From: Octopus bimaculoides
Lineage: Eukaryota
Assembly (NCBI RefSeq): GCF_001194135.2
Contig: NC_069003.1
Coordinates: forward strand, 5,848,856 to 5,888,269
Direction: 5' to 3'
DNA length: 39,414 nucleotides
The translations under genes were made by a program, and so were the position numbers. Shown here in pieces: positions 4,615-38,435 of this stretch; the stretch's first letter is position 1, and each line of letters opens with the position of its first letter. The notes below the pieces were generated by a model that was given only the letters and a program-made list of their open reading frames with translations, had not been told where the DNA came from and did not search any database.

Positions 4615-4985
4615 TCTTTTATTCTTTTACTTATTTCAGTCATTTTGACTGTGGCCATGCTGGAGCACCGCCTTGAAGTGTTTTTGTCAAACAATTCGAC
4701 CTCAGGACTTATTTTTAAAGCATAGTACTTATTCTATCGGTCTCTTTTGCCGAACCGCTAAGTTACGGGGATATAAACACACCAACACCTGTTGTCAAGT
4801 GATGATGGTGGAGATACACACACACATACATATACGATGGGCTTCTTTCAGTTTCCATCTACCAAATCTACTCACAAGGCTTTGGTCTGCCCAAGGCTAT
4901 AGTAGAAGACACTTGTCCAAGGTGTCACAAAGTGAGACTGAACCCGGAACCATGTTGTTGGGAAGCAAGTCTCTTACCACACAAC
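4615..4985 (-). mobile_element. SINE family A, near full length
   Basis: Same head, core and tail blocks as 1780-2160, with several CpGs retained. Confidence 0.85.
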
Positions 4986-5000
4986 CATACCTCTACCTAT

Positions 5001-5270
5001 ATCATCATCATCATCATTTAACGTTTGTTGTTCATGCTGGCATGGGTTGGACGGTTTGACGGGGGCTGGTAAGCTGGAGGGTTGCACCAAACTCCAGTCT
5101 GATTTGGCATGGTTTTCTACGGCTGGATGCCCTTACTAATGCCAACCACTCCAAGAGTGTAATTGGTGCTTTTACATACCATTGGCGTGACACCGGTATC
5201 TGCCACAACTGCAATTTTGCTCAGCTTGATGGGTCTTCTTCTCAAGCACGACATAATGCCAAAGGTCTTG
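5001..5270 (-). mobile_element. (GAT)n-tailed retroposon (SINE/LINE 3' end family)
   Basis: (CAT)n followed by ttaacg...catgctggcatgggttggacggtttgac...ggctggatgccct. Family members recur at 5300-5430, 9180-9680, 20990-21175, 22190-22350, 22700-23030, 25124-25404, 26270-26450 and 30890-31045. Confidence 0.85.
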
Positions 5271-9179: not shown

Positions 9180-9680
9180 TCTCTTATATTTTGGTCCATC
9201 ATCTGCCACAGTCACCTCTATCCCACCCAGTCCAAACCTCCCTATCACCCCAATGTCTCTCAAGGGCATGTCATGACACATCTTCGCCACTATCTCTCTC
9301 TCACTGTTGCTCTCTTTATCTTACTGACTCACCCACCTTCTTTACCCTATTCTCCAACTCACCCGCCTTTCTTTCCCATCTGGGGTACCCATGTATCTAC
9401 TCAACAGCAAGACACCCATCCTTGTCCCTCTATACCTTCAATTACTCATCAACCAGCACAGAGCCACCACCATGCCTCAATACTACTCCCCGCTCTCAGC
9501 CGAAGTAACTTGCTGACCCTGTGCGCACTGGTGTCATGTAAAAAGCACTGGTACTAGTACCTCATACAAAGCATAAGAAGTCATAGAAACCAAGCCAAAG
9601 CAGTCAGTGGAGTCTGGTGCAGCTCCTATCAAACTGTCCAACCCATGCCAGCATGGAAAACTTACGTTAAATGATAATGA
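9180..9680 (+). mobile_element. Longer (GAT)n-tailed retroposon copy with a C/T-rich upstream body
   Basis: A pyrimidine-rich body leads into ctctcagccgaagtaac...catgtaaaaagcac...aactgtccaacccatgccagcatgg...taaatgataatgatg. Confidence 0.6.
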
Positions 9681-13085: not shown

Positions 13086-13310
13086 TTAACCCTTTAACAT
13101 TAAGATTATTCCGTCAAATGTGATGTTTATTTATCCACATTGTTTTGAATTAATCATGGATTATCTCATAGCATTGAGATTTCAATGATGTGATTGTTTA
13201 CTTTTAGAATGACATTGTAGGATAGGTGTGAGAAGTCAGATCTGGCTGATCTGAACATAAGACAGCTGGAATATTTGGGCAGGATATGGCCAGTTTAAAT
13301 GCTAATGAGT
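13086..13310 (+). mobile_element. piggyBac-like MITE (TTAA-CCCTTT end)
   Basis: ttaaccctttaacatt...aaatgctaatgag. The family recurs at 15920-16017, 24976-25432, 27890-28030 and 36366-36570. Confidence 0.7.
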
Positions 13311-14709: not shown

Positions 14710-15629
14710 CAACAACAACAACAATTTAAATAGGAATTTTTTTTAAATCTAGCTTTTCACTGGAATTTACTTGAAGTTTAAATTTAAATTTCTCATTAAA
14801 CGCCCCCTCAAATTTTGGTTTATGGAAAAATTCATTTTATGAATTAGTAATTTCATATCAAAAATATTCAATAAGTAAATAAAATTAAAAAAATAAAACT
14901 ACAGGGTAAAAAAAAATGTGTTAAAATTTCCATTTTCATTTTACAAAATCTTAGAAATATTTTAAAATTCCAATCCATTTTCTATTTCTGTGTGTGCGTG
15001 TGTGTGTATATATGTTCATGGATATATATGTGTTCATGTATATGTATGTTTGTATGTATACATTTGTGTGTATTATGTGTATATGTGTGTGATATAGTGT
15101 GTTTATATGTGTGTGTGTGTATTTTGTGGGTGATGTGTGTGTACATATATTTATGTGTGCGTGTTATGTATATGTGGTGCATATATATGTATTATGTGTA
15201 TGTTTTTTTTTTGTTTGTTTGTTTTAAGAGGAAAATACTGGATTTTTTTTTATTGAAACCTGATCCCTACTAACACAAACATCCCTTTATACAGAAGCAA
15301 CTATATTCTTTCGTTAGCTCACTCCCCTCCCTCTCCCATTTCATTTATTATTCTTTCATTATTTTTTATTAGCTTTAGTCAATAAACTCTGGCCATACTG
15401 CAGCATCACTTCCTTCATAGTTTTATTTGGGGATTGCTACTTAACAAGAAAACCAACTCATAAAATGTTGCAGGATGTGTGGTGAAGAAGATTGCTTTGC
15501 TACCACATGGTTTCAGGTTCAATCCCACTGCTTAGTACCTTAAGCAATTGGCTTCTACTGTAGCCTCAGTTCAGCCAGTGGTTTGTGAGTAAATTTTTGT
15601 AGACAGAAACTGTGTTGAAGCCTGTTGTG

Positions 15630-15687
<58 letters not shown>

Positions 15688-16224
15688 GGTTCACCTTCCA
15701 CACCATCACTACTTGACAGTTGGTTTGGGTTTGTTTATGTCTCCATAACTTAGCAATTTAATAAAAGTAACTGATATAATAAGTACAACACTTACAAAAA
15801 ATGTAAGTACATGGGATGATTTGTTCAAGGCAGTGCTCCAGTATGGCCACAATCCAATGACTGAAACAGATAAGAGATAAAAATCACACACACACACATA
15901 TGCATGAGTATGCACATAGCTTTGATATTTTCATGATGTGATTGTTTATGTTTAGAAGGACATTGTAGGATTGGTGTGAGAGGCTGGATATGGCTGGCTT
16001 GGATGCTAAAGGGTTAATTTAACACCTGTCTGGTTGATCACCACCACCGCCACTGCCAGCGCTGTCACCGATGCCTCCTCCTTTAGAGAACACTCTTGTA
16101 AGCATTTGGAGAAAATCATTTGTCTGAGAATACCAGTATCCTCATCCCTTTCTCTCATTAGTCTTGGAGACGTTTCAAAAACGTGGCACCAGTATTGCCT
16201 CTCGCTTTCTGACTAAACTACAAA

Positions 16225-16612
16225 CAAGCATGGCTGAGTGGTAAGAAGTTTGCTTCCCAACCACCTGGTTCTAAGTTCAGTCCCACTTTGGACAAGTGTC
16301 TTGTACTATGAGCCTTGCACCAACCAAAGCCTTCGGAATGGATTTGGTGAATGGAAACTGAAAGAAGCCTTTTGTGTGTATATATATATATATATACATC
16401 TATGTGTGTATGTCTTTGTTTGGTTCCCATCCCACCTCTACCGCTTGTTAACCACTGTTGGTGTGTTTACATCCACATAACTTAGCAGTTTGGCAAAAGG
16501 AGACCAATAGAATAAGTATCAGGCTTTAAAAAAAATGAGTACTGGGGTTGATTCAGTTGACTAAAACCCTTCAAGGTGGGACCCCAATGACTGAAATGAG
16601 TAAAGGATAAAA
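16225..16612 (+). mobile_element. SINE family A, near full length
   Basis: Head, core, (TA/TG)n middle and tail all present. Confidence 0.85.

Positions 16613-18261: not shown

Positions 18262-18316
<55 letters not shown>
18245..18316. repeat. (TG)n microsatellite at the tail of a SINE
   Basis: Direct inspection. Confidence 0.9.
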
Positions 18317-18317
<1 letters not shown>

Positions 18318-18528
18318 TTTTATCGAGTTTCAGTCATTTGACTGTGGCCATGCTGAAGCACCGCCTTAAAGGGTTTTAGTCAAACAAGTCGACCCCAGGA
18401 AGTATTTTTTATAAACCTAGTACTCGGTTTCTTTTGCCAGACTGCTAAGTTACGGGGACATAAAGACACCAACACCAATTGTCAAGCAATGGTGGGGGGA
18501 CAAACACAGACACAAAGACACACACACA

Positions 18529-18576
<48 letters not shown>

Positions 18577-18735
18577 ATGGCCTTCCACCAGTTTCTATCT
18601 CACCAAATCCACTCACAATGCTTTGGTTGGCCTCAGGCTATAGTGGAAGACACTTGCCTAAAGGATACATGTGGGACTGAACCTGGAACCATGTGGTCGG
18701 GAAGCAAGCCTCTTACCACACAGCCATGCCTGCAC
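18315..18735 (-). mobile_element. SINE family A, near full length
   Basis: All family blocks present, with an expanded (CA)n middle. Confidence 0.85.
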
Positions 18736-19279
18736 CTGTGTGCGTGTGTATATCTATGCATGTATGTAAAAGTCTGATCAACACAGGATGCTGTTTATAC
18801 CATTTGTTCCCTATGCATGCTAACCACATCACTTTACTGGAAGTAGGCTGGGTGTTTAGTACTTTATATGGAGTTCTAAATTCAATGGTAGCAGTCATTC
18901 CTCTAATTGTACACACAGGAACCACCACCACTACTACTACTACTACTGGTATGTGTATGTGTATATATATAGGTATATAACATATGTATGTGTAGCTGGG
19001 GGGGTATATTGTGTTGTATTTTTCAAATTTCTCACTAATGGAGGAAACGCTGGTTTCTAATCTAGAAACCTGACTCTTTCACTGGAATTTAAACAACATA
19101 AACCAGGGTTATCTTTTATGTATGTATGTATACATCTATGTTTGCATGTACATGTGTATGCATATACATGTGTATGTGCAACTGTACCCTGAGGTTCAGG
19201 CACAGATAGCTTTGCTTATGTTTGTATTTATTTATTTATTTATGTGTGTGTGTGCGTAGGTATGTGTGTACATGAGTGA

Positions 19280-20380: not shown

Positions 20381-20463
20381 GGCAATGGCTGGAGGGAAGA
20401 GTGTATCAGAGAATTACGCTTTTGCAGGAATGCATCATATTTTTGATCAACATGCTGCTTCTG
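20381..20463 (+). CDS. WDR13: WD repeat protein 13, internal coding exon A (83 nt, phase 2 to phase 1)
   Basis: Acceptor tgttttgtag| and donor |gtgagt. Translates (R)[27 protein letters not shown](V), matching the recalled human WDR13 segment [25 protein letters not shown]. Visible inside ORF-track entry 20331..20603. Confidence 0.93.
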
Positions 20464-21809
20464 GTGAGTTTCAAATATTTCATTCTACATATTCCTGTCA
20501 AAGACTTCCAAGATCTTCTTCTTCCATCATGTATTTTGGTAAAATCAACAGCATTATCAATCACAGGTTTCTAATGGACCGATTACTGGTCTGCTATTTT
20601 TGATGAGGGTGGGGCAGAAGAGGACCAAAGGATTGTTTGTGTAACTCGGGCAGAGTAAATATCACACAAGGTATTATTATTGTTTTGTTTGACACATTGG
20701 TTTATGGAAAATTTTCTTATCAATGTGCATCTCTTTCACTGACACATACACGTGCACACATCATCATCGTCATCATTTTCTTCATTGTCATCATCATCAT
20801 CATCATTGTGTTTGTTGTCAACATTATCATCACCATCATCATCTTCTGCCTCCTCCTCATAACCTCCTTCATCATTGGGCCATAAACAAACCAACACTTG
20901 TTGGTGATGGTCACAAACACAAATACACACACACACATATATATATCCTGCTCAGTTGAGGGAGTCTTAACTTGTGGGTACTTGACAACCTCACCAGCAC
21001 TAGTACCACATAGAAAGCACCCAGTACACTCTGTTAAGTTGTTGGCATTAGGAAGGGCATCCAGCTGTAGAAACTATGCCAAAGTAGATACAGAACCTCT
21101 TGTTCATCTGTTCCTGTAAAACCATCCAACCCATACCAGCATGGAAAAAAGAATGCTAAACAATAATGAAGATATGTCAGGATTCCACACAGTTTCCATC
21201 TACTAAATTCACTCACACGGCATTGGTTTATAACAGAAGACACTTGCTCAAAGTGCCACACAGTAGGACTAAACCCCAAACCAAACTGAGTTGCTTCACC
21301 ACACACCCATGCCAGCACCCCTGAGCCATGTTATAAATTTATTGTTTAAATCCCACCCCAAAAAATATCAGCAACACTTAACCAAATTATGAATTAATCA
21401 CCACCAACACTTGAAACTCAGTTGTACAACCAAAACCATGAATTGTCATGTGATTATCTCACACCAATTAATTAATTCCTTTTGTTCAGGTCTTCATTAT
21501 TTTATAATCTCCACAAGTGTGATAGGTGCTTTGGATCTCTCATGTTCAGTTATTTCTTCAGTATATAAACAATTGACAATAATAAAAAAATTAAAAAAAT
21601 AAAAAAGATAAAAAAAAACAACCAAAGTCAAAGAACAAAAAAAAAATTCTTTCATTTTTATTAATAATTATTGCTGATTAGATAAAAATCTAATTCAGTT
21701 TCATTTAGTTGTTGAATATTAACGATTATTAATTCATTCACTTTCTGAGTTGTTTATGGTAATCTGTCTTATTCTCTGATACTGACTTGTGGGCTGAGCA
21801 ACACCACCA

Positions 21810-21840
<31 letters not shown>

Positions 21841-22136
21841 CAATGACACTGATAAAAGAGTACAGAATCAAAAGAATCCCCCATCATTGTCACCAATGTT
21901 AACTTTTCTGTGCTTGAATGAGTGGGGCAGAATTTGTTGTGGCAGATTTTGCTGTGATCAGACGGCTTTCTTGTCATCACCATTCACTTGTTTCCATGTA
22001 AGGTAATATTTCCTCTTGGCTGAATATGTTTTCACAGAAAACTAGAAGCAAATGACACCACCTGTATAATGTCAACTTCATTTACGACTTATGTGATGTG
22101 AAGACAAGGAAACACCAAAACAGACAGACACACACA

Positions 22137-22172
<36 letters not shown>

Positions 22173-22704
22173 ACATACACATTATCATCATCATCATCAT
22201 TTCACATCTGTTTTCCATGTTGGCATGGGTTAGATGGTTCGACAGGATCCAGCCAGCAGCAGGGCTGTGCTGATTTTCAGTGATAACTCTAGTGTGATTT
22301 CTATGATAGGATGTCCTTCCTAATGCCAACCATATTACAGTGTGTACTGGGTACTTTTTCTAGTGAGGTTGTGGAGAAACTTGTAAAACAGTAAAAGAAC
22401 AGAAAAAGGAAAAGGGAAAAGTTCCTACAACTAAGAGTGTGGGTTCCATCTATCTCTCAACGCTTAGATTGGTAGCTTCTAGATTTCACTATAGTGTTTT
22501 GATGGAGTTCTTTCTGTCTCTCATTCCTTCAGCTCAGGAATACTCTAGTGGTAGTGTGCATGAAATATTTGACTGCAGTTCATTTCAACTCTTCAATTTA
22601 TGGTCCCATTGATCCCAACTTTTGTTTGTGATAAGGCTAATCATATACATACATACATACAGAATTGATATCCTAAAACCACCTTAGTATTGCTTATGCA
22701 TGGA

Positions 22705-22885
22705 TGGTGCTGGTGCCATATAAAAAAAACACTAGTGCTGGTCCCACAAAAAAAACACTGGTGCTGGTCCCACAAAAAACTACTGGTACTGGTCCCACAA
22801 AAAAATACTGGTGCTGGTCCCACAAAAAAATACTGGTGCTGGTACCACATAAAAAACACACTGGTGCTGCCATGTAAAAAGCACT
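22705..22885 (+). repeat. Minisatellite of about 7 units of 25-28 bp (tggtgctggtcccacaaaaaaa.ac) inside a (GAT)n-tailed retroposon
   Basis: Tandem units seen directly. The array runs into catgtaaaaagcactgtaaagtagttggcattaggaagggcatccagc. Confidence 0.9.
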
Positions 22886-23589
22886 GTAAAGTAGTTGGCA
22901 TTAGGAAGGGCATCCAGCTGTAGAAAACATGCAAAACAGACTATGGAACATGGTGAGACTCCTGGCCTTGCCAGCTCCCATCAAACTGTCCAACCCATGC
23001 CAGCTTGAAAAATGGACGTTAAATGATGATTATGCTCCTCGTATTAATTGAAAGCAGACAACATACATGGCGTGTTTGAATCATTAAAGATACTTTTGTA
23101 GCACTCTAGCCTGTTAACATGGGGCAAGTGAAATCGAAATTGAACCAAATTCAATGACTGGCACAGGTGCCAGTGGAACACTAACAGCACCATCCAAGCA
23201 GGAATCACTGCCACCCCATATTTTAGTAACTACACAATACATACTGCAGCACTAAGATGTTAATTTACTTACTGAAAAGCAATATTTTGTTCTGCTGATA
23301 CTCTGAGAGTCACATCTGACAAACCACATGCATAGATCTTTGCGTTGCAAATTTTTCTGGATGGTTAATCATTTGCCGTTTTCAGATCAGCCAAATGCAA
23401 ATCAATTCTGTAAATGTTTCCCCAGCACACTGCAACAAGAGAGCTTGTGAGTAAAAATACAATAAAAGAAAACCAGAAACATCTTTGTTTAGTAATTAAA
23501 AAAAAAATCTTAAGTACGTTGAAGTTAAAACAAGAAGATTGAACATTGAAAGCAGCTTAACAAATGACTGTTTTAAAAGAAACTCAATT

Positions 23590-23630
<41 letters not shown>

Positions 23631-24975
23631 TTACCTTTTTTTCTTTTTGTAATTAAAGCAATTGTTGGAGCATAAAACTGAAGTGAATGTAATATGAAAG
23701 GTTATATTAAATGAAATGAAGATTATATTGTAAAAGGATTGCAAAAGTTTATCGCAACAAAATTTATAAAAGAAACGTTGTGTAATCCAAATCCAAAATT
23801 TAGTCAATCCAAAATTTATCTATTTATTATATAGCAGCAGTAGATCCATTCCACGCAATCCAACATTGCTGTAGATCTTTGGGGAATATCAGGATTGGTT
23901 AATCAAAGTTGGATAAACAGAAACTATGCAGGTACCTGGAAGACGTGTGTGTATGTGTGGTTCTTAGAAATAGAATTGCTTCTTCCAGATCCTTCTTCAT
24001 AAAATCCCTTGAATGTAATTTGACTGGTTTCATTCAGTGTCAGAAACAGTCAAATTTAATATATGTGAAATAAGTAATTTTAAAATACATCACGATTTGT
24101 ATGTGGTTGAAGTTGTGCTCTGTATATTTTTATTGACTCCCCACCGCACTCTGGCTCCACCACCACCACCACCATCATCATTTAATGTTCATTATTTCTA
24201 TGCTTGCATGGATCAGATGGAATATGCTGAGGCAGATTTTCTGCAACTGGACGCCCTTCCCGTTGCCAATCCTCACCTGTTTCCAAGCAATGTAGTATTT
24301 CACCATGGAAGACTGAAACGAACAATATTACTTGTATGATGGTGATGCTCATTTACGATCATCACACACACAATGGGCTTCTTCTAGTTTCCACCTATCA
24401 AATCTAACAGCAAGGCATTGGTCATCCCAAAGCTGTAGTAGAAGACGCTTGCCCAAGGCGCTGCACATTGGGAATGAGCCCAAGACCACATGTTTGGGAA
24501 GCAACTTCTCAACAGCATCAACCACGCCCAGCACTTGTGGCCTAATTGTTTCCAGTTCCATCTCCACAGCCCGAAGTGTATGGAAACTGTGCAGAAGCCT
24601 GTCAGATGGATCGTATTTGTTGTTCAAAGGTAAAACTATGTCACACACACTTAGCTTGCGGATTACACTTCTTCTGTTTGTGGATTACCTTCTTCCAGTG
24701 CTTGGTAGGTTTGTGTCTCATAGAAGCTCTGAGATGTCCTTTATGTTATCAGTCTTTACCCCTACAATCTCCTCTTTGCAAGTATCCTCTACATCAGTGG
24801 TTCTCAGCTGGGGTTCATATGATCTTTGGGTGTCTGTATAAGATTTCCTTGTTAAAATTTATGTCCAGTAAATTGTTTATAACTCTATAATACACAAAAT
24901 GTTTTCACAATTTTTTAATTACAATTCAATAATATCTTTCAATAATTCTGCTTGTCATTCCCTTACCTCCTCTTC

Positions 24976-25432
24976 TTAATCCTTTAATATTTAAACTGGC
25001 CATATCTGGCCTCTCACACCTACCCTACAATGTCGTTCTAAAAATAAATGATCACATTGCCGTAATTCTTAAGCAACATGATAATGCATGATTAATTCAA
25101 AACAATGTGAATGAATAAGCATTGTGCTGCCTGACTGGCTCCCATGCCGGTGGCACGTAAAAAGCGCCATTCAAGCATGGTCAATGCTAGTACTGCCTGA
25201 CTAGCCCTTGTGCCAGTGGCATGTAAAAAGCACCCCTACACTCCGGAGTGGTTGGCGTTATGAAGGATATTCCAGCTGTAGAAACTTTGCCAGATTGGAG
25301 TGGAGCCTGGTGAAGCCTTCTGGCTTGCCAGCCCTCAGTCAAACCATCCAACCCATGCCAGCATGGAAAGCAGACGTTAAACAATGATGATGATATTGAG
25401 GATGATCTGAGAGAGTAATCCTAAAGGGTTAA
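24976..25432 (-). mobile_element. piggyBac-like MITE with TTAA at both ends, split by a nested retroposon
   Basis: TTAA at 24976-24979 and 25429-25432 (ctaaagggttaa). The body resumes after an insertion at ~25124-25404. Confidence 0.75.
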
Positions 25433-25884
25433 ATGTGAATTACAGCAAGAGATTTGTTTTGCTTTGCCCCCCCCCCTCCTCCTCTTATATTTGACCTTCA
25501 TTTTTAAGTGTCATGTCACTCTCCTCCTCAGAGTCTGTGGTCTTACAAACTGCATGAACTCACAAGTGCTAGCAACATGAAAAAAAAACACTTAGAACAC
25601 GTACAGTAGTTGGCATTTGGAATCTTCAGCCACAGAAACCATACTGAAGCAGACACTGGAGCACAATGCAGTCCTTGGATCCAGTCAAACCATCCAATGC
25701 ATGCCAGCATGGACATTTTACATGATGATGATGGTGGTGGTGGTGGTGGTGAGGAGCCATCTGTCTATCATAAATCCTGTTGGGACTGAAGTATGTCCAA
25801 CTTGTGTGCTCTCCTGATTGGTCGGTAGTCAAGTAGCTGAAGTTCATGTTACAGACGGTCATTTTGTTTGCATCACAGGGCTCT

Positions 25885-25997
25885 AGGCGCAGGCAGGGCT
25901 GTGTTATAAGAAGCTTGTCTGTGTGGCACTTTGAGCAAGCATCTTCTACTATAGGTCTTGAGCAGATCTGGCAGATGGGAACTGAGAGAAGACTGTC

Positions 25998-26032
<35 letters not shown>

Positions 26033-26235
26033 CGTAACTTTGTATTTCTGTCTCCTATCACCACCATTCCACAACCAGTGTTGGTCTGTTTACATCCCCG
26101 TAACTTAGCAGTGAAACACAAGAGACCAATAGAATAAGGCTTTAAAAAAAAAAAAGCCCTGGGGTTGATTCATTCGACTAAAAGTTTTTCAAGGTGGTGC
26201 TTTAGCATGGCCGCAGCAAGTAAAGGTAAAAGAAG
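25885..26235 (+). mobile_element. SINE family A, near full length
   Basis: Family head, (TA)n middle and tail. Confidence 0.8.
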
Positions 26236-26569
26236 TCGATAATTACTTTGTTGCATACTATGGCTGATTATTTAACGTCTGTTTTCCATGCTGATATGGG
26301 TCAGACAGTTTGACAAGAGCTGGTTATCTGGAGAGCTGCACTAGGCTCCAATTGTCTGTTTTGGTAAGGTTTTTCTGGTTGGATGCCCTGTTTAATGCCA
26401 ACCACTTTACAGAGTGTACTGGATGCTTTCTATGTGGCACCAGCACTTTATCTATTCACTATCCCCAGTTTGCCTAACTCACCTAACCCACCAGTGCTGT
26501 AGATCTAGGGGGGGGGCACACACAAGAAGGGAACCAAATACCAGAAGGTCTTTTAGTTTGATGTGCCAA

Positions 26570-27501
26570 TTCTGACATCCTCCACAGAACACACACACGT
26601 GGTTGTGTGGTTAAGAAAGCTACTTCACAACCCTATGGTCTTGAGTTCAGTCTCACCATGTGGCACCTTGGGCAAGTGTCTTTTAGCCCCAGGCTATCTA
26701 ATGCCTTGCGAGTGAATTCGATAGACAGGAATTTTACAAAGCTAGTTGTGCATTAAAGCTGGGTGGACAGAAACTATGCAGAAGCCCAGAGGATGTATCT
26801 GTGTGTGTTCATTTGTTGTTCCCCCCCCCCCNNNNNNNNNNNNNNNNNNNNNNNNNNNNNNNNNNNNNNNNNNNNNNNNNNNGGGTTAGATGAATTCATA
26901 TAACAGAGATTTTGTTTCACATCAGACACCCTTCCTGTCTCTACTCCTTATCTCTTATTTCTTTTTAAGTAAGGGAGTTTTCAGTCTACTTCTCTTTGAA
27001 AGGACAGAGTTCCTGGGCTATTTGTTGACCAGGAAATGTCGAAAATGACACCATCTGAAACCCAACTTCGCATAGAAAGGAAACATCCACACGCACACAC
27101 AGATGAGAGACTTTGTTCAGACAATTTTTGTTTATCAGATTCACTCACAAGGCGTCAGTCAGTTCAAGGTCTTAGTAGAAGATACTTACTCAAGCTACCA
27201 CAACAGTGAAACTGAATTTAAGACCTGATAAGGTTGTGAAGTAGACTTCCTGGCCACCACACATCCGTGTGTCCTCTGGGCTTCTGCATAGTTTCTGTCC
27301 ACCCAGCTTTAATGCACAACTAGCTTTGTAAAGTTCCTGTCTATTGAATTCACTCGCAACGCATTAGATAGCCTGGGGCTAAAAGACACTTGCCCAAGGT
27401 GCCACATGGTGAGACTGAACTCAAGACCATAGGGTTGTGAAGTAGCTTTCTTAACCACACAACCACGTGTGTGTGTGTGTGTTCTGTGGAGGATGTCAGA
27501 A
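26570..27501. repeat. Local inverted duplication with arms 26570-26793 and 27272-27501
   Basis: The arms are reverse complements with 3 substitutions plus a (CA)n length difference. The 478-nt spacer contains gap 26832-26882. Confidence 0.9.
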
Positions 27502-28801
27502 ATGGTCCCATCATTATTTCCATGCTGGCAAATTTTTGACAGCCAGATGCCCCTCCAGGCGCCTACTCTCTCACCTGTTTCCAATTTAGGCACTGTTTGC
27601 CCCTGGCCAGACATGTTTTCACAGAATATTGGAAATGAATGACATTGCATATATGACAGTGATACATCAAGTGATGTGTCACTATCACATGATGTCAAGG
27701 CAACGAGACACACACACACGCACATGTATGCATATTACATATATAATATATATATAAATAGTTACTAACAAGGAATTGTCAATCCAAGCAAAATATTTCA
27801 CAAACTCTCAATTAGTACAAATACACCAAGCTAACAAAATGTTTTCAGATTATGCCTTTTTTTCATATTCCACCCGTTTTCTGTTGAAACTGGTTAAATG
27901 TGGCCTCTCACACCAACCCTGCAATGTCATACTAAAAATAAACATTCACATCTATTGAAACCTCAAAGCTATTAGATAGTGAATGATTACTTCAAGACTA
28001 TGTGAATAAATAAGCTTTACATTTGAGGGAGATTTGGTTGCTATTTCTAACAAGCCAAACAACCTTGTAGTTTATATCAGACCCCAATGATATGATGGCT
28101 TGAACAACCATTTAGGGGCACCGTTGTTGTTCGTTGGTATGACCAAATAATAGAGGCACCTTTGTTTGTTGATGGCACAATAGATAAACTGGATTTCTTT
28201 ATGACGACAGAGATGTATCAAGTTGCTTGTGAGGAAACAATCAGCATTGTTTTCTCTCCCACTCTTTAACATGAATTACATTGAGAGAAAGAGAGAGAGA
28301 GAGAGTAGGATAGATGGAAGGAAGGGGAGGAGGATATCTTTACAAATAGTTTTCATTCTTCCTCCTCCACCTTTCTTTTAAGTGTTCCTGTTCATGGCTT
28401 GAAATATCTGACTGAAGTAGTAGCCTCCTTGAAAGTAAAATACTATTTCTGTCATCATCATCACCACCACCACCACCACCATCATCATCACCACCATTAT
28501 GATCCCTAATATGATCCTGACCACCATCATCATCATTATCTCCAGCAACATCTTCATTGTTGAACCAATGGGAGTGCACTTACACGGCAACCCAATCTAT
28601 TAGAAATACCAGCTAAATCTCTTTTGACTCATACCCTGCCATCTTTAAAACAATAAAAGGAAGGACATAATGGTTCTAAGATTACCTGTCTTAAAAGACA
28701 GGATTATCATCAATGGGAAGTCTTTGATTTTCAGTCTGACCTAGGGTTAAACACCAAGTTCTCATTTGAAGGTGACCCTAAGATATTACCAACCCTTTGT
28801 T

Positions 28802-28872
28802 TAAGACCCACCATGGAGTTCTGTTCCCACATCTGGGGTAGCATTAAGGTGCTTCACACAGATAGACATACT
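28802..28872 (+). mobile_element. CR1/L2/Jockey-group LINE ORF2 fragment
   Basis: Translates RPTMEFCSHIWG, matching the post-RT motif vRP.lEYcs.iW. Confidence 0.5.
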
Positions 28873-29199
28873 TGACCCTCGTGTGTTGACTCCTTCCACA
28901 TCTGGATCAGGACTTTTGCTACACACAGACATCCTAGACCAGGATCCCAACCTGGGGTCCTGATACAACTTATGCAGATGCAAGATGGCATAGCAAAGGG
29001 TGTGACAACAAGAGAAAATATATCGTCATCATTTAACATCCACTTTTCCATGCTTGCATGGGTCAGACGGAATTTGTTGAGGCAGATTTGCTATGACTGA
29101 ATGCCCTTCCTGTTATCAACATTCACCTAAGGACACAGCCTGTACGATGATGGTGCTCACCTATCACAACCACATGATATTAAGACAAAGGGACACCAA

Positions 29200-29230
<31 letters not shown>

Positions 29231-29704
29231 TCTCATGCACACACATACACACATGATGAGCTTCTTTCAGCTTCTATCTATCAAATTTTACTGTTAAGGC
29301 TTTGATTGACCCAGGGCTATTATCATCATCATTCTTTAATGTCTGCCTTCCATGCTGGCATGGGTTGGACGGTTTGACCATGTGGTTTTACCACACAGCC
29401 ATGCCTAGACAATTTATGCACCAAATACATCCCTTAACAGTTTGTTTCTTAAAACATTTTATATACATATATATATATATATATATAAAGACACTTGCCC
29501 AAGGTGTTGCATGATGGCTCTGAACCCAGAACCAAGTGGTTGGGAAGCAAGCTTTTTAACCACACAGCCATGTCCAGAAAATATATACGTAATTAAAATC
29601 ATTTTTCAGAATAAAATCATTAACCCAAATTGTTCAACTCAATTGCTTTCCCATCATTATAGAGGCCTTCTGAGTGGGTTTCTCTTGGCTATCACTTGGC
29701 AACA

Positions 29705-30010
29705 GCAAGGGTCTACTTGATGTTTGTGAACCTCCAGCGTGCACCACCCAGTGAAACTTCTGCTTTTAGTGTTCTGCAATTACATTTATGCACTCTGCTC
29801 TGTTCTCCAATTACCTCATTTCATGCTCCCACTACAACATTTCTTTTATAGACCTTTCCATGGTCCTTTGTGTCGTAACCAATTGAAGTCTTTGTGGTAG
29901 TCCGCATTTCATTTGCATATAAGAGCATGGCTAGTTCATACCATTCAAGTGACTATGCCACCATATTCGATCTTGTCTAGCTTTCCTTTGAGCACAAGTT
30001 TCAGTGAAGT
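29705..30010 (-). mobile_element. RTE-clade LINE ORF2 C-terminal fragment, degenerate
   Basis: With frameshifts, the minus strand gives ALLYANEMRTT / LVTTQRTMERS / NEVIGEQSRV / NVIAEH*KQKFHW, paralleling recalled RTE AMLYASETW..LVTTQRAMERS..NEVIREQSGV..KQKFRWAGH. Confidence 0.7.
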
Positions 30011-30060
30011 AAATGCTTTTTATCCAGCTTTCTGTATCCATACTAAAAGTATGGATCCTG

Positions 30061-30093
<33 letters not shown>

Positions 30094-30309
30094 GTATATA
30101 TATGTATNNNNNNNNNNNNNNNNNNNNNNNNNNNNNNNNNNNNNNNNNNNNNNNNNNNNNNNNNNNNNNNNNNNNNNNNNNNNNNNNNNNNNNNNNNNNN
30201 NNNNNNNTATATATATATATATATGTATGTATATATATATATATATGTATATATGTAGTGCAGATCAGGATGTATGGGTATGTATGTGTGTGTTTGTATA
30301 TATATATAA

Positions 30310-30635
30310 AGTGAAGGCACGTAGCTTAATGGTGAGGACAATTAGCTCACAGTCATTGAGTTGTGTCTTTGATTCTTAGTGGGGTGTTGAGTCCTTGAGC
30401 AAGACACTTTATTTCTCTCGCTCCAGCCTGCTTAGCTGGCAAAAATGAGTGCTACCTGTATTTCAAAGGACCAGCCTTCACACACTCTGTGTCATGCTGT
30501 CTCTTCCTGAAAACTATGTTAAGTGTTTGCATGTCTGTGGAGTGCTCAGCCACTTTCATGTTAATCTCAGGAGCAAGCTGGTTTCTCTGATTGGACCAAC
30601 TGGGACCCTCATCATCATAACCAATGGAGTGCAAG
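30310..30635 (+). mobile_element. SINE family C
   Basis: Collinear with 19280-19585. Confidence 0.8.
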
Positions 30636-31945
30636 TTATGCATGTAATAGGCTGGGTGTGACAAATCTAATATCAGACTCTCAGAATGTGGTGAGATATT
30701 ATTAGCCTTTTAGTGTCCAAATTACTCTTTAATTGTAAACAGAAGTTGATCTGGTTAAGAAGTTTGCTTCTCAATCACCAGCTTCCAGGTTCAATCCCAT
30801 TGTGTTGCACCATAGGCAAGCATCTGGTACCACACCATGGACAAGTTGTCATTGTTTAGACCCAAGTTAGCTGTAATCCCTGATATTGTGCACAGGTGTT
30901 GGTGCCACATACAAAGCACCCAGCCATAGAAATCATGCCAAAACAGACAATGAGGCCTGATGTGGCCCCTGACCTTACCAGCTCCAGTCAATGCATCCAA
31001 CCCATGCCAGCATGGAAAAGGGATGTTAAATGATGATGATGATATCTGTTGATTCACCAAAAGCAAAGCAGGGTAGGTTGACCCACTGATGATTGGAAAT
31101 GAGTAACTCTGAGTACTAGAAATTGGAGACTTTCAATTATAATGTGTGTGTGAATGAATGACTCTATGAATGAATGAGTGGTGTGTGGTCTAGTGAATAG
31201 GTTTATTGGTCTCATTGTCATAAGATTGCTGGTTTAATCCCAGGGCTGGGTGTCCTTGAGCAAGGCACTACATTTTGCCTTGTTGCTATGGTACTTAGCT
31301 GTAAATGAGTATCAGCTGAGTGTAGTTCTCCCTCTCTCTCTCTCTGTCTCTCCAGATGCCCTTCTGGGTAACATGTAGGAGGGGCCAAGAGGGTGAAAAT
31401 GGATTGTTCATGACTGGATTGGCACCCAAAACATTTAGCAGAAGCATGATATATGTTAAATGTGTGTGTGTAAATGTCGAATCTGATATTTTGACACGAC
31501 ACAACAGGAATCCGTTTCCTTCTGCAACAACCACTGAGTCAAGGTTTCTTTGCCCACCACTTCCTACCCATCCACTCTGCACACTCAACACCAATCACAG
31601 AGACCTCAGGATAGATGGTGGTGTCCCCACTCCTCTCACTAGAACTACACTGAAATAAATTTACTCTGTTCATCATCAGAAGAAAGTATTATCAAACACA
31701 CAACTTGTTTAACTTAAAAAAAAAAACCCACCACCACCACCCCCACTACCGCTCCTTAACTCATGTTGCTGCCATTGCCTTTCTTTCCATGGCAATTAGG
31801 ATTGCATTGAGAGAGAGAGAGAGAGAGAGAGAAATCACACACATTTACACAGCTACTTTGCTTGGTACTTTATATTTGTGTTTCAAAAATACTGGGTCAG
31901 TCAATTAGGATTGGTTTTTAAACTTCTGTTGAAAGGATTGTGTGA

Positions 31946-31959
<14 letters not shown>

Positions 31960-31994
<35 letters not shown>

Positions 31995-32231
31995 ATGTAT
32001 GTATATGTGTGTGTGTGTGTGTGTGTATGTATATATGTGTGTGTGTGTGTATGTATATATGTGTGTGTGTGTGTGTATGTATATATGTGTGTGTGTGTNN
32101 NNNNNNNNTATGTATATATGTGTGTGTGTGTGTGTATGTATATATGTGTGTGTGTGTATGTATATATGTGTGTGTGTGTGTATGTATATATGTGTGTGTG
32201 TGTGTATGTATATATGTGTGTGTGTATGTAA

Positions 32232-32263
<32 letters not shown>
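31960..32263. repeat. Higher-order microsatellite (TGTATGTATATATG(TG)n) with a 10-N gap
   Basis: A ~20-24 bp super-unit repeats about 11 times. Confidence 0.9.
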
Positions 32264-32265
<2 letters not shown>

Positions 32266-32984
32266 CAACAAAGTTGTTTTCATTCTTTAATGACATATGG
32301 ATGATTGTTTAGGAAATATTTTTGATAAGAACTTCATCATTTTTTCTCTTCTCTTTCTTTCACAAAACAATTTCCTTATGAAAACAATAAAGGTCCCTTC
32401 AGTTTGTTTGTTTTATCAGTTGTGAGACTTTGCCCATGCTAGGGCACTGACTTGAAGAATTTTTAATCAAATAATCTTTTTAAAGGCTGGTACTTATTCT
32501 ATCAGTCTCCTTTGCTGAAGTGCTAAGTTACAGGGACGTAAACACACCAACACCGGTTTGTCAAGTGGTGATGAGGAACAAACACACACATACATATGAT
32601 GGGCTTCATTCAGTTTCCATCTACCATATCCACTCACAAGGTTTTGGTCTGCTTGAGGTTAGAGAAGACACTTGCTCAAGGTGCCATGCCTGTTTTTTAG
32701 TTTTAATTTTTTTTATTCTTTAGTCTTGGTTCCCAATGTTTGACCCTATTTACTACTGCAACTGTTACAAAAATTGTTACCCAGGCATGGTTGTGTGGTT
32801 AAGAAGCTCTCTTTGCAAGCACATGGCTTCAGGTTCAGTCCTACAACACAGCATCTAGGACAAATGTCTCTTACTATATAGCCCCAGACCAACAAATGCT
32901 TTGTGGAGTTGTAAGTGAATTTGGTTGACAGAAACTCTATAGTAGATGTGTGTGTGTGTGTGTAGGTTTTGAACAACTGACCCT

Positions 32985-33150
32985 GAATGGGAAAATCTGC
33001 AAACAGATCTCTGACTTGTTTTGGAGAATTTGTTGCAATTGCTTCCTCCAGAGTCATTTCCCATTGAATTGATGGAGAATTTGCTGCTATTTCTAGCATT
33101 TCAAGTGATGTGGCTAACATACAAGCTACCTCACGGAAGACAGAAGCTGT
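32985..33150 (-). mobile_element. Possible Helitron Rep/helicase fragment
   Basis: VFREVAC...QWEMTLEEAIATNSPKQVRDLFA resembles the recalled Helitron segment TFREAC..LGLLEND.QWD.T(M/L)EEA....SPKQLR.LFA. Confidence 0.45.
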
Positions 33151-33344
33151 ATGGGTCGGGGCAGGAGTGTGCAGCTGCATGAGTTAAGGAGTGGTGGTAA
33201 GTTGTATGTTTAGTACTGTCTTCTGACCGAGCTCCATTTGTTGCTCATGTTGAGGTTATGTGAGAAGGAAGAAGCTTTGACTCATTGGTTACTGAGTGGA
33301 GAAACAGTCATGTGTTAAGATATCAAACTACAGGCATACATTTT

Positions 33345-33880
33345 TACTGGGTCATCCCATAAATAATGCAGGTTTTTTTTTATACTTCTATCATTTAAAA
33401 AAATTAAGATGAAGTTCTTTTTTAATCTAAAATATACTCCCCTTCATTTTCTACAATGCTCTTCCATTCTGTCTGGTAGACTTGCAAGGCTCCTCTTCCA
33501 AAATTCACTTATCCGTGTCGAAAAATACTCCTCCAGAACTGTTCTGATCTTGTCTAAAGAATTCATATTTTATCTGTCCAAATGATTTCAAAGACTGCAG
33601 AATAAATGATAATCAGATGGGGCAATATCCAGTGAATATGGTGGGTGGGGCACTGTTTCCCATTGAAACTGTTCCAGTCTTTGGAATGGTCATCCTCGCT
33701 GCATGTGGCTGAGCATTATCCTGATGGAAGAACGCCTTTCGTCTTGAAACCAAAGGTGGTTGTTTTTCTTCTCTTGCTGACTTAAGCTGCTCACAGTAGA
33801 TCTCCTTTGATATCATTTGGTTTGGGTTTAAAAGTTGAACTTTTAAACCTTTCATATCCCACCGAACAGATAACAGCACC
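33345..33880 (-). pseudogene. Mariner transposase pseudogene, C-terminal half plus TIR
   Basis: The minus strand gives RRKAFFHQDNAQPHAARMT, then after a frameshift QRLEQFQWETVPHPPYSLDIAPSDYHLF (mariner HDNA and YSPDLAPSD motifs). It has internal stops and a terminus tactgggtcatcccataaataatgc. Confidence 0.88.
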
Positions 33881-33984
33881 TTGAATAAGGTGCCATGCAG
33901 AGGGACTGAACTGAAAACCCTGTGGTTGAAAAGCAAAGTCTGTAAGCACACAGCCCTAACTCAATGTCTGTCTGTCTTTTGCAG

Positions 33985-34125
33985 TTACCAGTGTCAAATT
34001 TGCCAATGATGATAAATCGAGGGTAGCATGTTCATCCACAGACGGTACTCTATCCATCTGCCAACTCATACCACCTCCAGCAACAGTCATTTGCATGTTA
34101 CGGGGTCACGGCAGTGGGATAACAG
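33985..34125 (+). CDS. WDR13: WD repeat protein 13, internal coding exon B (141 nt, phase 1-1)
   Basis: Acceptor tgtcttttgcag| and donor |gtaagt. Translates (V)[46 protein letters not shown](D), versus recalled human [42 protein letters not shown]. In frame with exon A. Confidence 0.94.
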
Positions 34126-34603: not shown

Positions 34604-34770
34604 ATTTTTCTTGGTCCTCATCAAATGACATCATCCTCTCCGTTTCCTTGGATGGTACTGCTCGTTTGTGGGATGTGGCAGCGGGCAGCTGCATCCGTGT
34701 CATTGAAGACGGCAGTGGGGCTGAGCTGCTCTGTTGCCATTTCCAGCCGTTAAACAATAACATGTTTGTT
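34604..34770 (+). CDS. WDR13: WD repeat protein 13, internal coding exon C (167 nt, phase 1 to 0)
   Basis: Acceptor ttttccctaacag|. Translates (D)[55 protein letters not shown], containing the WD40 [10 protein letters not shown] motif; human has [23 protein letters not shown]...AELLCCTFQPVNNNL. Donor is GTATCCTTT (U12 type). Confidence 0.94.
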
Positions 34771-35351
34771 GTATCCTTTGCAAATAATAACAAAACGTAA
34801 CACACCAGAAAATACAACAGCTACAAGCAAGAAGATCTTATCCTCTATCTTCTATACATACATGCATATACAAGTTAATGAGCACAATTGCTACATGGTC
34901 AGTCATCTTGCCAGAAATAACAGCCAAATCGCTTTCAGACCCTATTGTCATTTCTTTGTGTGTCTGTGTGTATTCTTTTAGTTGTTTCAGTCATCTTGAC
35001 TGCGTCTGTGCTGGAGCACCGCTTTTGGTTGGACAAATCGATCCCAGGACTTATTCTATCGATTTCTTTTGCGGAACCACTAAGTTACGGGGACATAAAC
35101 ACACCAGCATCGTTTGTCAAGCGATGGTAGGGGGGACAAACATAGACACACAAACATATACACACACACACAAACATATATATACACACACAACAGGCTT
35201 CTTTCAGTTTCCATCTACCAAAGTCACACACAAATCTTTGGTCGGCCTGAGGCTATAGTAGAAGACACTTGCCCAAAGTGCCATGCAGTGGGACTGAACC
35301 CAGAACCACGTGGTTGGTAAGCAAGCTACTTACTAAACAACCACTCTTGCA

Positions 35352-35386
<35 letters not shown>

Positions 35387-35685
35387 TTTTGGTGCGAATG
35401 GTTTTTATATGGCACCATGTTTTGCAATCCTGTAAATAATAATAATAATGGTATTTTTATAGAAGCTTAAAGATTATGGCGATCACCGTGCAATGACTAA
35501 GGAAAATAGTCTAATAAGGGGGCATATAAGCCCTCGACATAAAAGAGAAGGCTTTCCTATCCGCATGGGATGNNNNNNNNNNNNNNNNNNNNNNNNNNNN
35601 NNNNNNNNNNNNNNNNNNNNNNNNNNNNNNNNNNNNNNNNNNNNNNNNNNNNNNNNNNNNNNNNNNNNNNNNNNNNNNNNNNNNN

Positions 35686-35733
<48 letters not shown>

Positions 35734-36926
35734 CACACAAAATTATGAGCTGAGGGAGACTTCTATGTGGTCATTCAGTCTGCTAGAAGTATCAGGAAAA
35801 ATCTCCCTCAACTCACATCTAATGGTGTTTGTATAGTGGTTGTAGTTTAAGCCCAAGTCTACCATGATCAAATAAACCAGTGATCAAAGGCGTTCCAACT
35901 GTGACCATCCATCTCAACCATTTCTATGTCAGACACTATATTGTCTAGCATGCCCTCCCTTTTATAGAATGGTAGGGTGTAAGTTGAGGATATTTTTGTT
36001 GCTATTTTTAACGGGTCAGATAACCACATAGTATCCGTCACTTCTTGACTCTGTACACTTACAGATTCTGTGTTAGTGATAAACACTGAAAACTTAGCTT
36101 GGCAGGGTGTGACAGTTGCCGCCTTATGTTAATGAGGTCAACTTACTGACCAAGGGAGATAATTTACACTTGACTATGTCTTTGCCACTTCTCAATGAAA
36201 CAGATCAGGTTCTTATTTTTGTTGCTTGAAGAAGGCATCGATATGAAGATGCAGTGGAAGTGTACAGATATGAGCTTAATAGTTTGGATGATTATTTGAA
36301 AGTCTAGTGATTCAACCTTTTTTATCTGGTCGTATGACTTGCTGGAAATAGTGACCAAAACTCCCTTAACCCCTCAGCATTTAGATTACTCTCTCAAGTG
36401 TAATTGCATATTTATTTCCATTGTTTTGAATTAATCAAACATTATTTCATGGTTACGAAATTTTGATGATGTGATTGTATATTTTTAGAACGACATTGTC
36501 GGGTAGGTGTAAGAGGTCAGATCTGGCTGGTTTGAACACCAAACAGGTAGAATATTTGGGCTAAATATGGCTTTAGTAGACAACATATGGCATGCAGTGG
36601 GACTGCACCTGAAACCATGTGATTGGGAAGCAAACTTCTCAGCCATACCCACACCTGGGTGTACTGAATTATATAATCCTAGAGATTCTATGTCTGAAGA
36701 AAAAGCCAGGATGGCCATGGTTTGAATGCCTTTGATTATGAATCTGCTGGATCAGAACTAGTCTACAGTTAAATCACAACAACAACACCTCTATCTCTAT
36801 CCCCTGTTTCTGACCACAACCTCGCATGCCCTCTTTTTCTCCTCGCCTTTCACAGACACACATATTCCTTTGGTTTTATATGTCACTTGTTTTTTTTGTT
36901 TTTTTTTTTTCCTTAATACAAAACAG
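34771..36926 (+). other. U12-type (minor spliceosome) GT-AG intron of WDR13, 2156 nt
   Basis: 5' site GTATCCTTTG matches RTATCCTTT. Branch site TTCCTTAAT at 36909-36917 (consensus TTCCTTAAC) lies about 10 nt before the CAG, with no pyrimidine tract between them. Splicing restores the WDR13 frame. Confidence 0.88.
34965..35345 (-). mobile_element. SINE family A, near full length, inside the U12 intron
   Basis: All family blocks present and relatively CpG-rich. Confidence 0.85.
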
Positions 36927-36986
36927 ACGGGGAGCAATCGCGGCCACGTACAAGTTATGAATGTTTCCACTGGTCAGTGCTGTAAG
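36927..36986 (+). CDS. WDR13: WD repeat protein 13, internal coding exon D (60 nt, phase 0-0)
   Basis: Acceptor ttccttaatacaaaacag| and donor |gttagt. Translates [20 protein letters not shown], versus human [20 protein letters not shown]. Confidence 0.92.
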
Positions 36987-38292: not shown

Positions 38293-38435
38293 GGTGGATC
38301 AGGGAAAGCTGCTGGAAGAATCCTAACTCTAGCATTCGATTCCAATGGACGTATTTTATGGACTGGAGATGACAAAGGTTTCATTTTCTCGTTCCTGTTT
38401 GATATTGCAACTGGAAAATTAGCAAAAGGACGAAG
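38293..38435 (+). CDS. WDR13: WD repeat protein 13, internal coding exon E (143 nt, phase 0 to 2)
   Basis: Acceptor ttttaattcag| and donor |gtttgc. Translates [47 protein letters not shown](R), versus human [48 protein letters not shown]. Confidence 0.94.

Follow-up and report, generated by a model that had tools for sequence, protein, structure and literature searches.

A single intron, at positions 34771-36926 of the stretch of DNA analysed here (39,414 nucleotides, hereafter the window), starts and ends differently from the other introns of the same gene. The locus raises the question of whether this intron belongs to the rare U12 type, which by definition needs the minor spliceosome, and whether its class sets the output of the gene.

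WDR13 exons in the window

The named matches of a 171-residue exon translation are WDR13 proteins, from Callorhinchus (E = 7e-67), Acropora (E = 3e-60) and Biomphalaria (E = 3e-51), and the translation of the gene matches WD40 and beta-propeller models (Pfam). Using tblastn with Mytilus and Biomphalaria WDR13 we located five exons in the window, whose 199 residues show 71% identity to Mytilus WDR13. Identity to Biomphalaria WDR13 is 83% over the first 131 residues of the window product, and the proteins closest to this product are molluscan. The earlier note had named the gene WDR13, which is borne out by both the homology to named WDR13 proteins and the Pfam matches; judged by its sequence, the gene is a mollusc-like WDR13, and its long introns and many repeats might hint at a cephalopod. 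The exons are as follows.

20381..20463 (+): WDR13 exon, from tblastn with the Mytilus and Biomphalaria proteins; a U2-type donor, GTGAGT, begins at 20464
33985..34125 (+): WDR13 exon VTSVKFANDDKSRVACSSTDGTLSICQLIPPPATVICMLRGHGSGIT, from tblastn; pyrimidine tract and CAG before it, GTAAGT after it
34604..34770 (+): WDR13 exon 3, on the 5' side of the candidate U12 intron, from tblastn, the ORF list and sequence reading; ends in phase 0
36927..36986 (+): WDR13 exon of 60 nt, TGSNRGHVQVMNVSTGQCCK, from tblastn; followed by the U2-type donor GTTAGT
38293..38435 (+): WDR13 exon, from tblastn and boundary reading

The tblastn searches detected no N-terminal WDR13 exons anywhere in the window and no C-terminal half of WDR13 in its last ~1 kb; the C-terminal half presumably lies beyond the window end.

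The intron at 20464-33984 spans 13.5 kb and is rich in repeats and microsatellites, with four assembly gaps (those listed being 26832-26882, 30108-30207 and 32099-32108) plus (CA)n/(TA)n arrays. It also harbors a mariner-type transposase remnant (33616-33960, minus strand; Pfam Transposase_1, E = 1.2e-5), which ends 25 nt ahead of the exon start at 33985.

Splice signals at the two ends of the intron

Exon 3 ends at 34770 with the codons CCG TTA AAC AAT AAC ATG TTT GTT in phase 0, the intron begins at 34771 with GTATCCTTTG, and the downstream exon opens with ACG GGG AGC and encodes the 60-nt segment listed above. The signals read at this intron are given below.

34771..36926 (+): putative U12-type intron, GT-AG subtype, 2156 nt as assembled; from sequence reading, published 12-mer scores and the orthologue table
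34771..34779 (+): candidate U12-type 5' splice site GTATCCTTT, which agrees with /RTATCCTT starting at the first base of the intron and lies directly at the exon end that homology defines
36909..36917 (+): candidate U12-type branch-point sequence TTCCTTAAT, fitting TTCCTTRAY; from sequence reading
36924..36926 (+): CAG of the 3' splice site, directly after the A-rich ACAAAA; from sequence reading

In the branch motif, the second A (36916) lies 10 nt from the last intron base, and we infer that the branch adenosine is 36916 (or 36915), placing it 10-11 nt from the 3' junction. By sequence reading, the spacer that separates the branch site from the terminal CAG is ACAAAA and holds no pyrimidine tract. 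A long T-run, TTGTTTTTTTTGTTTTTTTTTTTT at 36887-36910, adjoins the branch motif on its 5' side and enters it, and the motif is followed only by A-rich sequence. The other three WDR13 introns start with GTGAGT (20464), GTAAGT (34126) and GTTAGT (36987), hold no TCCTTAAC-like motif and each end in a pyrimidine tract and AG, which marks them by sequence as ordinary U2-type introns.

The coordinates, the sequence and the phase 0 position after NNNMFV that the earlier note had assigned to the intron agree with our reading, and the same codon and phase recur in the orthologues. Its U12-type 5' splice site does sit at the homology-defined exon boundary; a branch site about 10 nt before the acceptor and an A-rich spacer were found where it had placed them, and the contrast it had drawn with the gene's other three introns holds for their donors as well as for their pyrimidine-tract ends. 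The rare intron class appears to have been called correctly from raw sequence.

Motif presence alone is without significance here: RTATCCTTT occurs 2 times in the window against 1.0 expected, and TTCCTTAAY once against 1.1 expected. Because these counts are at chance frequency, the case is argued from placement at homology-defined exon boundaries and from conservation, which constitute the evidence. Across all the fetched loci and the window (153,531 bases), RTATCCTT is found 15 times on the plus strand, and 8 of these matches fall at the orthologous WDR13 junction; the background away from the junction is 7 in 153,531 plus-strand bases, or 4.6e-5 per base. The remaining seven matches (window 19778; L004 2476; L007 2336 and 11534; L002 7937 and 16333; L008 743) were considered as a second U12 intron in WDR13 and rejected, as none abuts a recognisable coding exon.

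The strength of the two signals was assessed by proxy, taking the scores of identical 12-mers in a published table of curated human and mouse minor-intron signals with matrix scores (supplementary file 3 of Olthof et al. 2019, PMC6717393) in place of intronIC. The 5' 12-mer, consisting of the last three exon bases and the 5' splice site motif, is GTTGTATCCTTT and is identical to the 5' splice site of the RNPC3 minor intron, whose score is 97.07 under the human matrix and 93.58 under the mouse matrix (PMC6717393). The branch-site 12-mer, TTTTCCTTAATA at 36907-36918, recurs unchanged as the branch site of a minor intron in human ZC3H6, with a score of 91.0 (PMC6717393). Given cut-offs of more than 50, with a margin over the major-type score, for a minor 5' splice site and more than 65 for a branch site (PMC6717393), the window intron passes the published thresholds by proxy of these identical 12-mers. 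It thus has in common with curated human GT-AG minor introns the RNPC3 5' 12-mer, the ZC3H6 branch 12-mer, the termini and the closeness of the branch site to the 3' splice site, although those introns lie in other genes and another organism.

The orthologous intron in other animals

We compared WDR13 loci from nine other species, six non-vertebrates and three jawed vertebrates. All the species examined have the orthologous intron at the same codon, in phase 0, and in 7 of 7 other non-vertebrate copies (6 species) it is U12-type by its signals, with an RTATCCTT donor and a CCTTAAC motif that lies 10-13 nt from the 3' end. This comparison, which the earlier note had proposed as a check, strongly supports its reading, with a U12-type intron at the same codon in coral, snail, mussel, cockroach, sea cucumber and amphioxus. 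Listed for each species are the donor, the branch motif and how far the branch A lies from the 3' end.

Acropora digitifera, two tandem copies: donor GTATCCTTT; branch motif TTCCTTAAC; 12 nt
Biomphalaria pfeifferi: donor ATATCCTTT; branch motif TTCCTTAAC; 10 nt
Mytilus edulis: donor GTATCCTTT; branch motif AACCTTAAC; 10 nt
Branchiostoma lanceolatum: donor GTATCCTTT; branch motif TACCTTAAC; 12 nt
Apostichopus japonicus: donor GTATCCTTC; branch motif AATCCTTAAC; 13 nt
Blattella germanica: donor GTATCCTTT; branch motif AATCCTTAAC; 12 nt

ORF calls on other bivalve-like contigs (P0013, P0017) give V-S-F right after NNNMFV, as GTATCCTTY would. The window intron differs from its non-vertebrate orthologues in that its branch motif ends in T whereas theirs end in C, and it is 2156 nt long as assembled and filled with repeats, whereas theirs measure 431-892 nt.

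Several of these loci display peculiarities of their own. In Acropora digitifera the two tandem WDR13 copies are ~8.7 kb apart (L002 2282-3173 and 11000-11756), both with the U12 intron, and may reflect either a true duplication or an assembly artefact. The Biomphalaria pfeifferi intron (L001 19576-20261) starts with ATATCCTTT, and its only frame-preserving 3' end is TTCCTTAACTGTTACTAA followed by ACA GGA; of the alternatives, AC at 20257-58 leaves an in-frame TAA and AG at 20264-65 shifts the frame. The termini of this intron therefore seem to be AT-AA, which is rare and non-canonical among U12 introns, and its branch A would lie 10 nt from the 3' end. On the ENA contig P0011, whose exon is identical to Elysia marginata WDR13, the read-through after NNNMFV is V|ASF and not V|VSF or V|ISF, which implies a donor GCN TCN TTY, perhaps GCATCCTT, an unusual U12-like donor starting with GC.

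Public gene models break at the U12 intron in two of the genomes, which gives the comparison some value for annotation. In GenBank, WDR13 of Biomphalaria pfeifferi is annotated as two genes (L001 10001-19611 and 19936-22349), with the break precisely at this intron, and the first of the split products ends in NNNMFVISFSVILFTLC, a read-through into the intron. The Branchiostoma lanceolatum model P0103 (L005 8813-10583) jumps from SCAFQP to GCVYSF, dropping VNNNMIV before the U12 intron together with coding sequence found by tblastn at 9266-9406; the minor intron seems to have misled the annotation here. The gene model in the window should be forced across 34770^36927.

In jawed vertebrates an intron occupies the same codon (NNNLTV | VGN) and the same phase as the window intron but has a U2-type donor in 3 of 3 species, namely a fish, a bird and a shark.

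Sinocyclocheilus (cyprinid): donor GTGAGT; 3' end with pyrimidine tract and CAG
Sula (bird): donor GTCAGT; 3' end CCCACAG (pyrimidine tract and CAG)
Chiloscyllium (shark): donor GTAGGG; 3' end off the contig

The status of human and mouse WDR13 was taken from published minor-intron gene lists alone, which include WDR1, WDR11, WDR27, WDR41 and WDR91, WDR13 being absent (PMC6717393). These orthologues indicate that the U12 intron of WDR13 is ancestral to animals and kept its U12 type from cnidarians to cephalochordates, which dates the intron to before the cnidarian/bilaterian split. On the simplest reading, a minor-to-major conversion would fall between the divergence of the amphioxus lineage and the diversification of jawed vertebrates; minor introns are known to be lost by conversion of this kind (PMC10639083). 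The conversion would explain why WDR13 is absent from the human and mouse lists, and it makes a tidy case of the process, bracketed by amphioxus on one side and jawed vertebrates on the other. A survey that includes an octopus reports a relative wealth of minor introns in molluscs (PMC10639083). Among the papers searched, none joins WDR13 with a minor intron; the one that contains both WDR13 and U12 has, by its title and abstract, polyadenylation-site cleavage as its subject.

Class of the intron and its possible role

The preceding evidence leads us to classify 34771-36926, in the WDR13 of a mollusc-like animal, as a genuine minor-spliceosome intron (U12 type, GT-AG subtype), with a probability of roughly 0.93. 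This assignment has to be weighed against two other accounts of the locus, one of which turns on an assembly gap within the intron.

35573..35685 (.): assembly gap of 113 N, wholly within the intron; the donor lies 802 nt away and the acceptor 1241 nt away
35686-35727: (TA)n, directly right of the gap, from blastn of the intron against the window
35349-35385: (TA)n, ~190 nt left of the gap, from blastn of the intron against the window

The gap leaves at least 113 intron bases unread, and only the length of the intron is made uncertain by it, the true length not necessarily being 2156 nt. The gap touches neither a splice signal nor coding sequence, so the reading frame does not depend on it.

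The first account, an ordinary U2-type intron (GT-AG) with ends that look U12-like by chance, might be argued from the fact that each 9-mer occurs in the window at about the chance rate, and from the T-run at ~36887-36910, which lies just 5' of the branch motif and could pass as a pyrimidine tract. The donor itself speaks against this, since GTATCC has C at +5/+6 where the gene's U2 donors GTGAGT, GTAAGT and GTTAGT have G and T. Moreover, both signals lie exactly at homology-defined boundaries, their 12-mers are identical to curated minor-intron signals, and they recur at the same codon in six further species (5 phyla) while intron length varies several-fold. We regard a chance resemblance as extremely improbable. 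The second account, in which the 5' and 3' signals belong to two introns with an exon hidden in the gap, or in which the scaffold was misjoined there, draws on the gap being unread and of merely estimated length. The flanking exons are nevertheless consecutive WDR13 exons in the right order and on the right strand, and both ends are U12-type, as a single intron predicts. The orthologous introns, of 431-892 nt, are single, and the number of residues from NNN to a hydrophobic-N-x-STG motif (VMNVSTG in the window) is equal in all correctly modelled orthologues inspected. As the orthologue exons join without a missing residue, no constitutive exon should be hidden in the gap, although an alternative (poison) exon might lie within it. 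The (TA)n array beside the gap and the second one nearby are a typical cause of an assembly break, and a hidden exon or misjoin is in our view very improbable.

Minor introns are recognised by the U11/U12 di-snRNP, which reads the 5' splice site and the branch sequence jointly before U4atac/U6atac.U5 joins. For the U12-type intron proposed here, the di-snRNP would bind the donor at 34771 and the branch motif at 36909 together, U4atac/U6atac.U5 would join next, and the adenosine of the branch motif would attack the 5' splice site. The 3' junction would be picked for its closeness (10 nt) to the branch site, without a pyrimidine tract; because this distance is short and fixed, an A-rich spacer would be tolerated and a pyrimidine tract unneeded. 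Splicing would join NNNMFV to TGSNRGH in phase 0, completing the WD40 propeller, whereas an unspliced message would end after nine extra codons. Alongside the signals, placement and conservation observed here and the U2-type state observed in vertebrates, we infer that the intron is removed by the minor spliceosome in this organism, joining 34770 to 36927. No Rfam family or tRNA was detected anywhere in the window, hence no minor-spliceosome snRNA gene there; the literature and the intact splice signals are what point to the organism possessing this machinery.

If the intron is retained, the message reads GTA TCC TTT GCA AAT AAT AAC AAA ACG TAA, that is, VSFANNNKT and a stop, precisely the premature termination that the earlier note had described.

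34798..34800 (+): in-frame TAA on retention, from sequence reading; the stop-to-stop frame list also ends at 34797

The stop falls after nine codons, within the predicted third WD blade region, and retained transcripts would probably be subject to nonsense-mediated decay or encode a truncated propeller. Decay is likely because the stop lies far upstream of the later exon junctions.

Slow splicing of minor introns and control by U6atac have been described for some human genes, and in U6atac-limited switches a premature stop on retention goes together with a need for the minor spliceosome, as it would in the window intron. This background lends some support to a regulated, rate-limiting switch that sets the dose of WDR13 by controlled retention, the rather generic role that the earlier note had put forward as inference. 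The stop nine codons into the retained intron, far upstream of later junctions, and the keeping of the U12 type across many phyla would both fit such a switch. Against it, nothing specific to the window intron, and no sign of rate limitation or regulated retention, was found in the window or the orthologues; the three jawed vertebrates (shark, teleost and bird) use a U2-type donor at this codon, and WDR13 is not among the minor-intron genes of human or mouse. Since vertebrates carry a U2-type intron there, dependence on U12 is dispensable for WDR13, and, in contrast to the proposed switches, the vertebrate conversion argues against necessity. Furthermore, neutral processes may explain much of minor-intron evolution according to a pan-eukaryotic survey, and persistence of the U12 type elsewhere is compatible with slow neutral loss (PMC10639083). 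We therefore consider a regulated switch unlikely. A more elaborate version would make the intron a dosage valve, in which retention of a long, repeat-laden U12 intron tracks minor-spliceosome activity (by tissue, stress or temperature) and throttles WDR13, and which was given up on the vertebrate stem at the conversion to U2. This we hold to be quite unlikely, and what the evidence favours is only its precondition, namely a U12 type, as judged from the signals, and a predicted premature stop on retention. As a U12-type intron, that of WDR13 is an ordinary example of a well-known class and opens no new question on splicing or on WDR13; the value added here is modest and comes from dating the intron, from the conversion seen in vertebrates and from the annotation breaks in two public genomes.

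The intron also contains the following repeats.

34957..35382 (+): interspersed repeat of ~400 nt, detected by comparing the intron with the window (blastn); its diverged copies elsewhere in the window number at least 10
36366..36571 (+): second repeat family in the intron, from blastn; copies at 13086-13290 and 24990-25121 on the minus strand

Open frames within the intron (34791-35255 on the plus strand, 35871-36128 and 36488-36751 on the minus strand) gave no Pfam match, and ARAGORN detected no tRNA-like part in the ~400-nt repeat. The copies of this repeat show 67-76% identity (e.g., 1782-2159, 4620-5002 and 18298-18765, and 16225-16517 and 15485-15784 on the minus strand), and it may be a SINE-like element.
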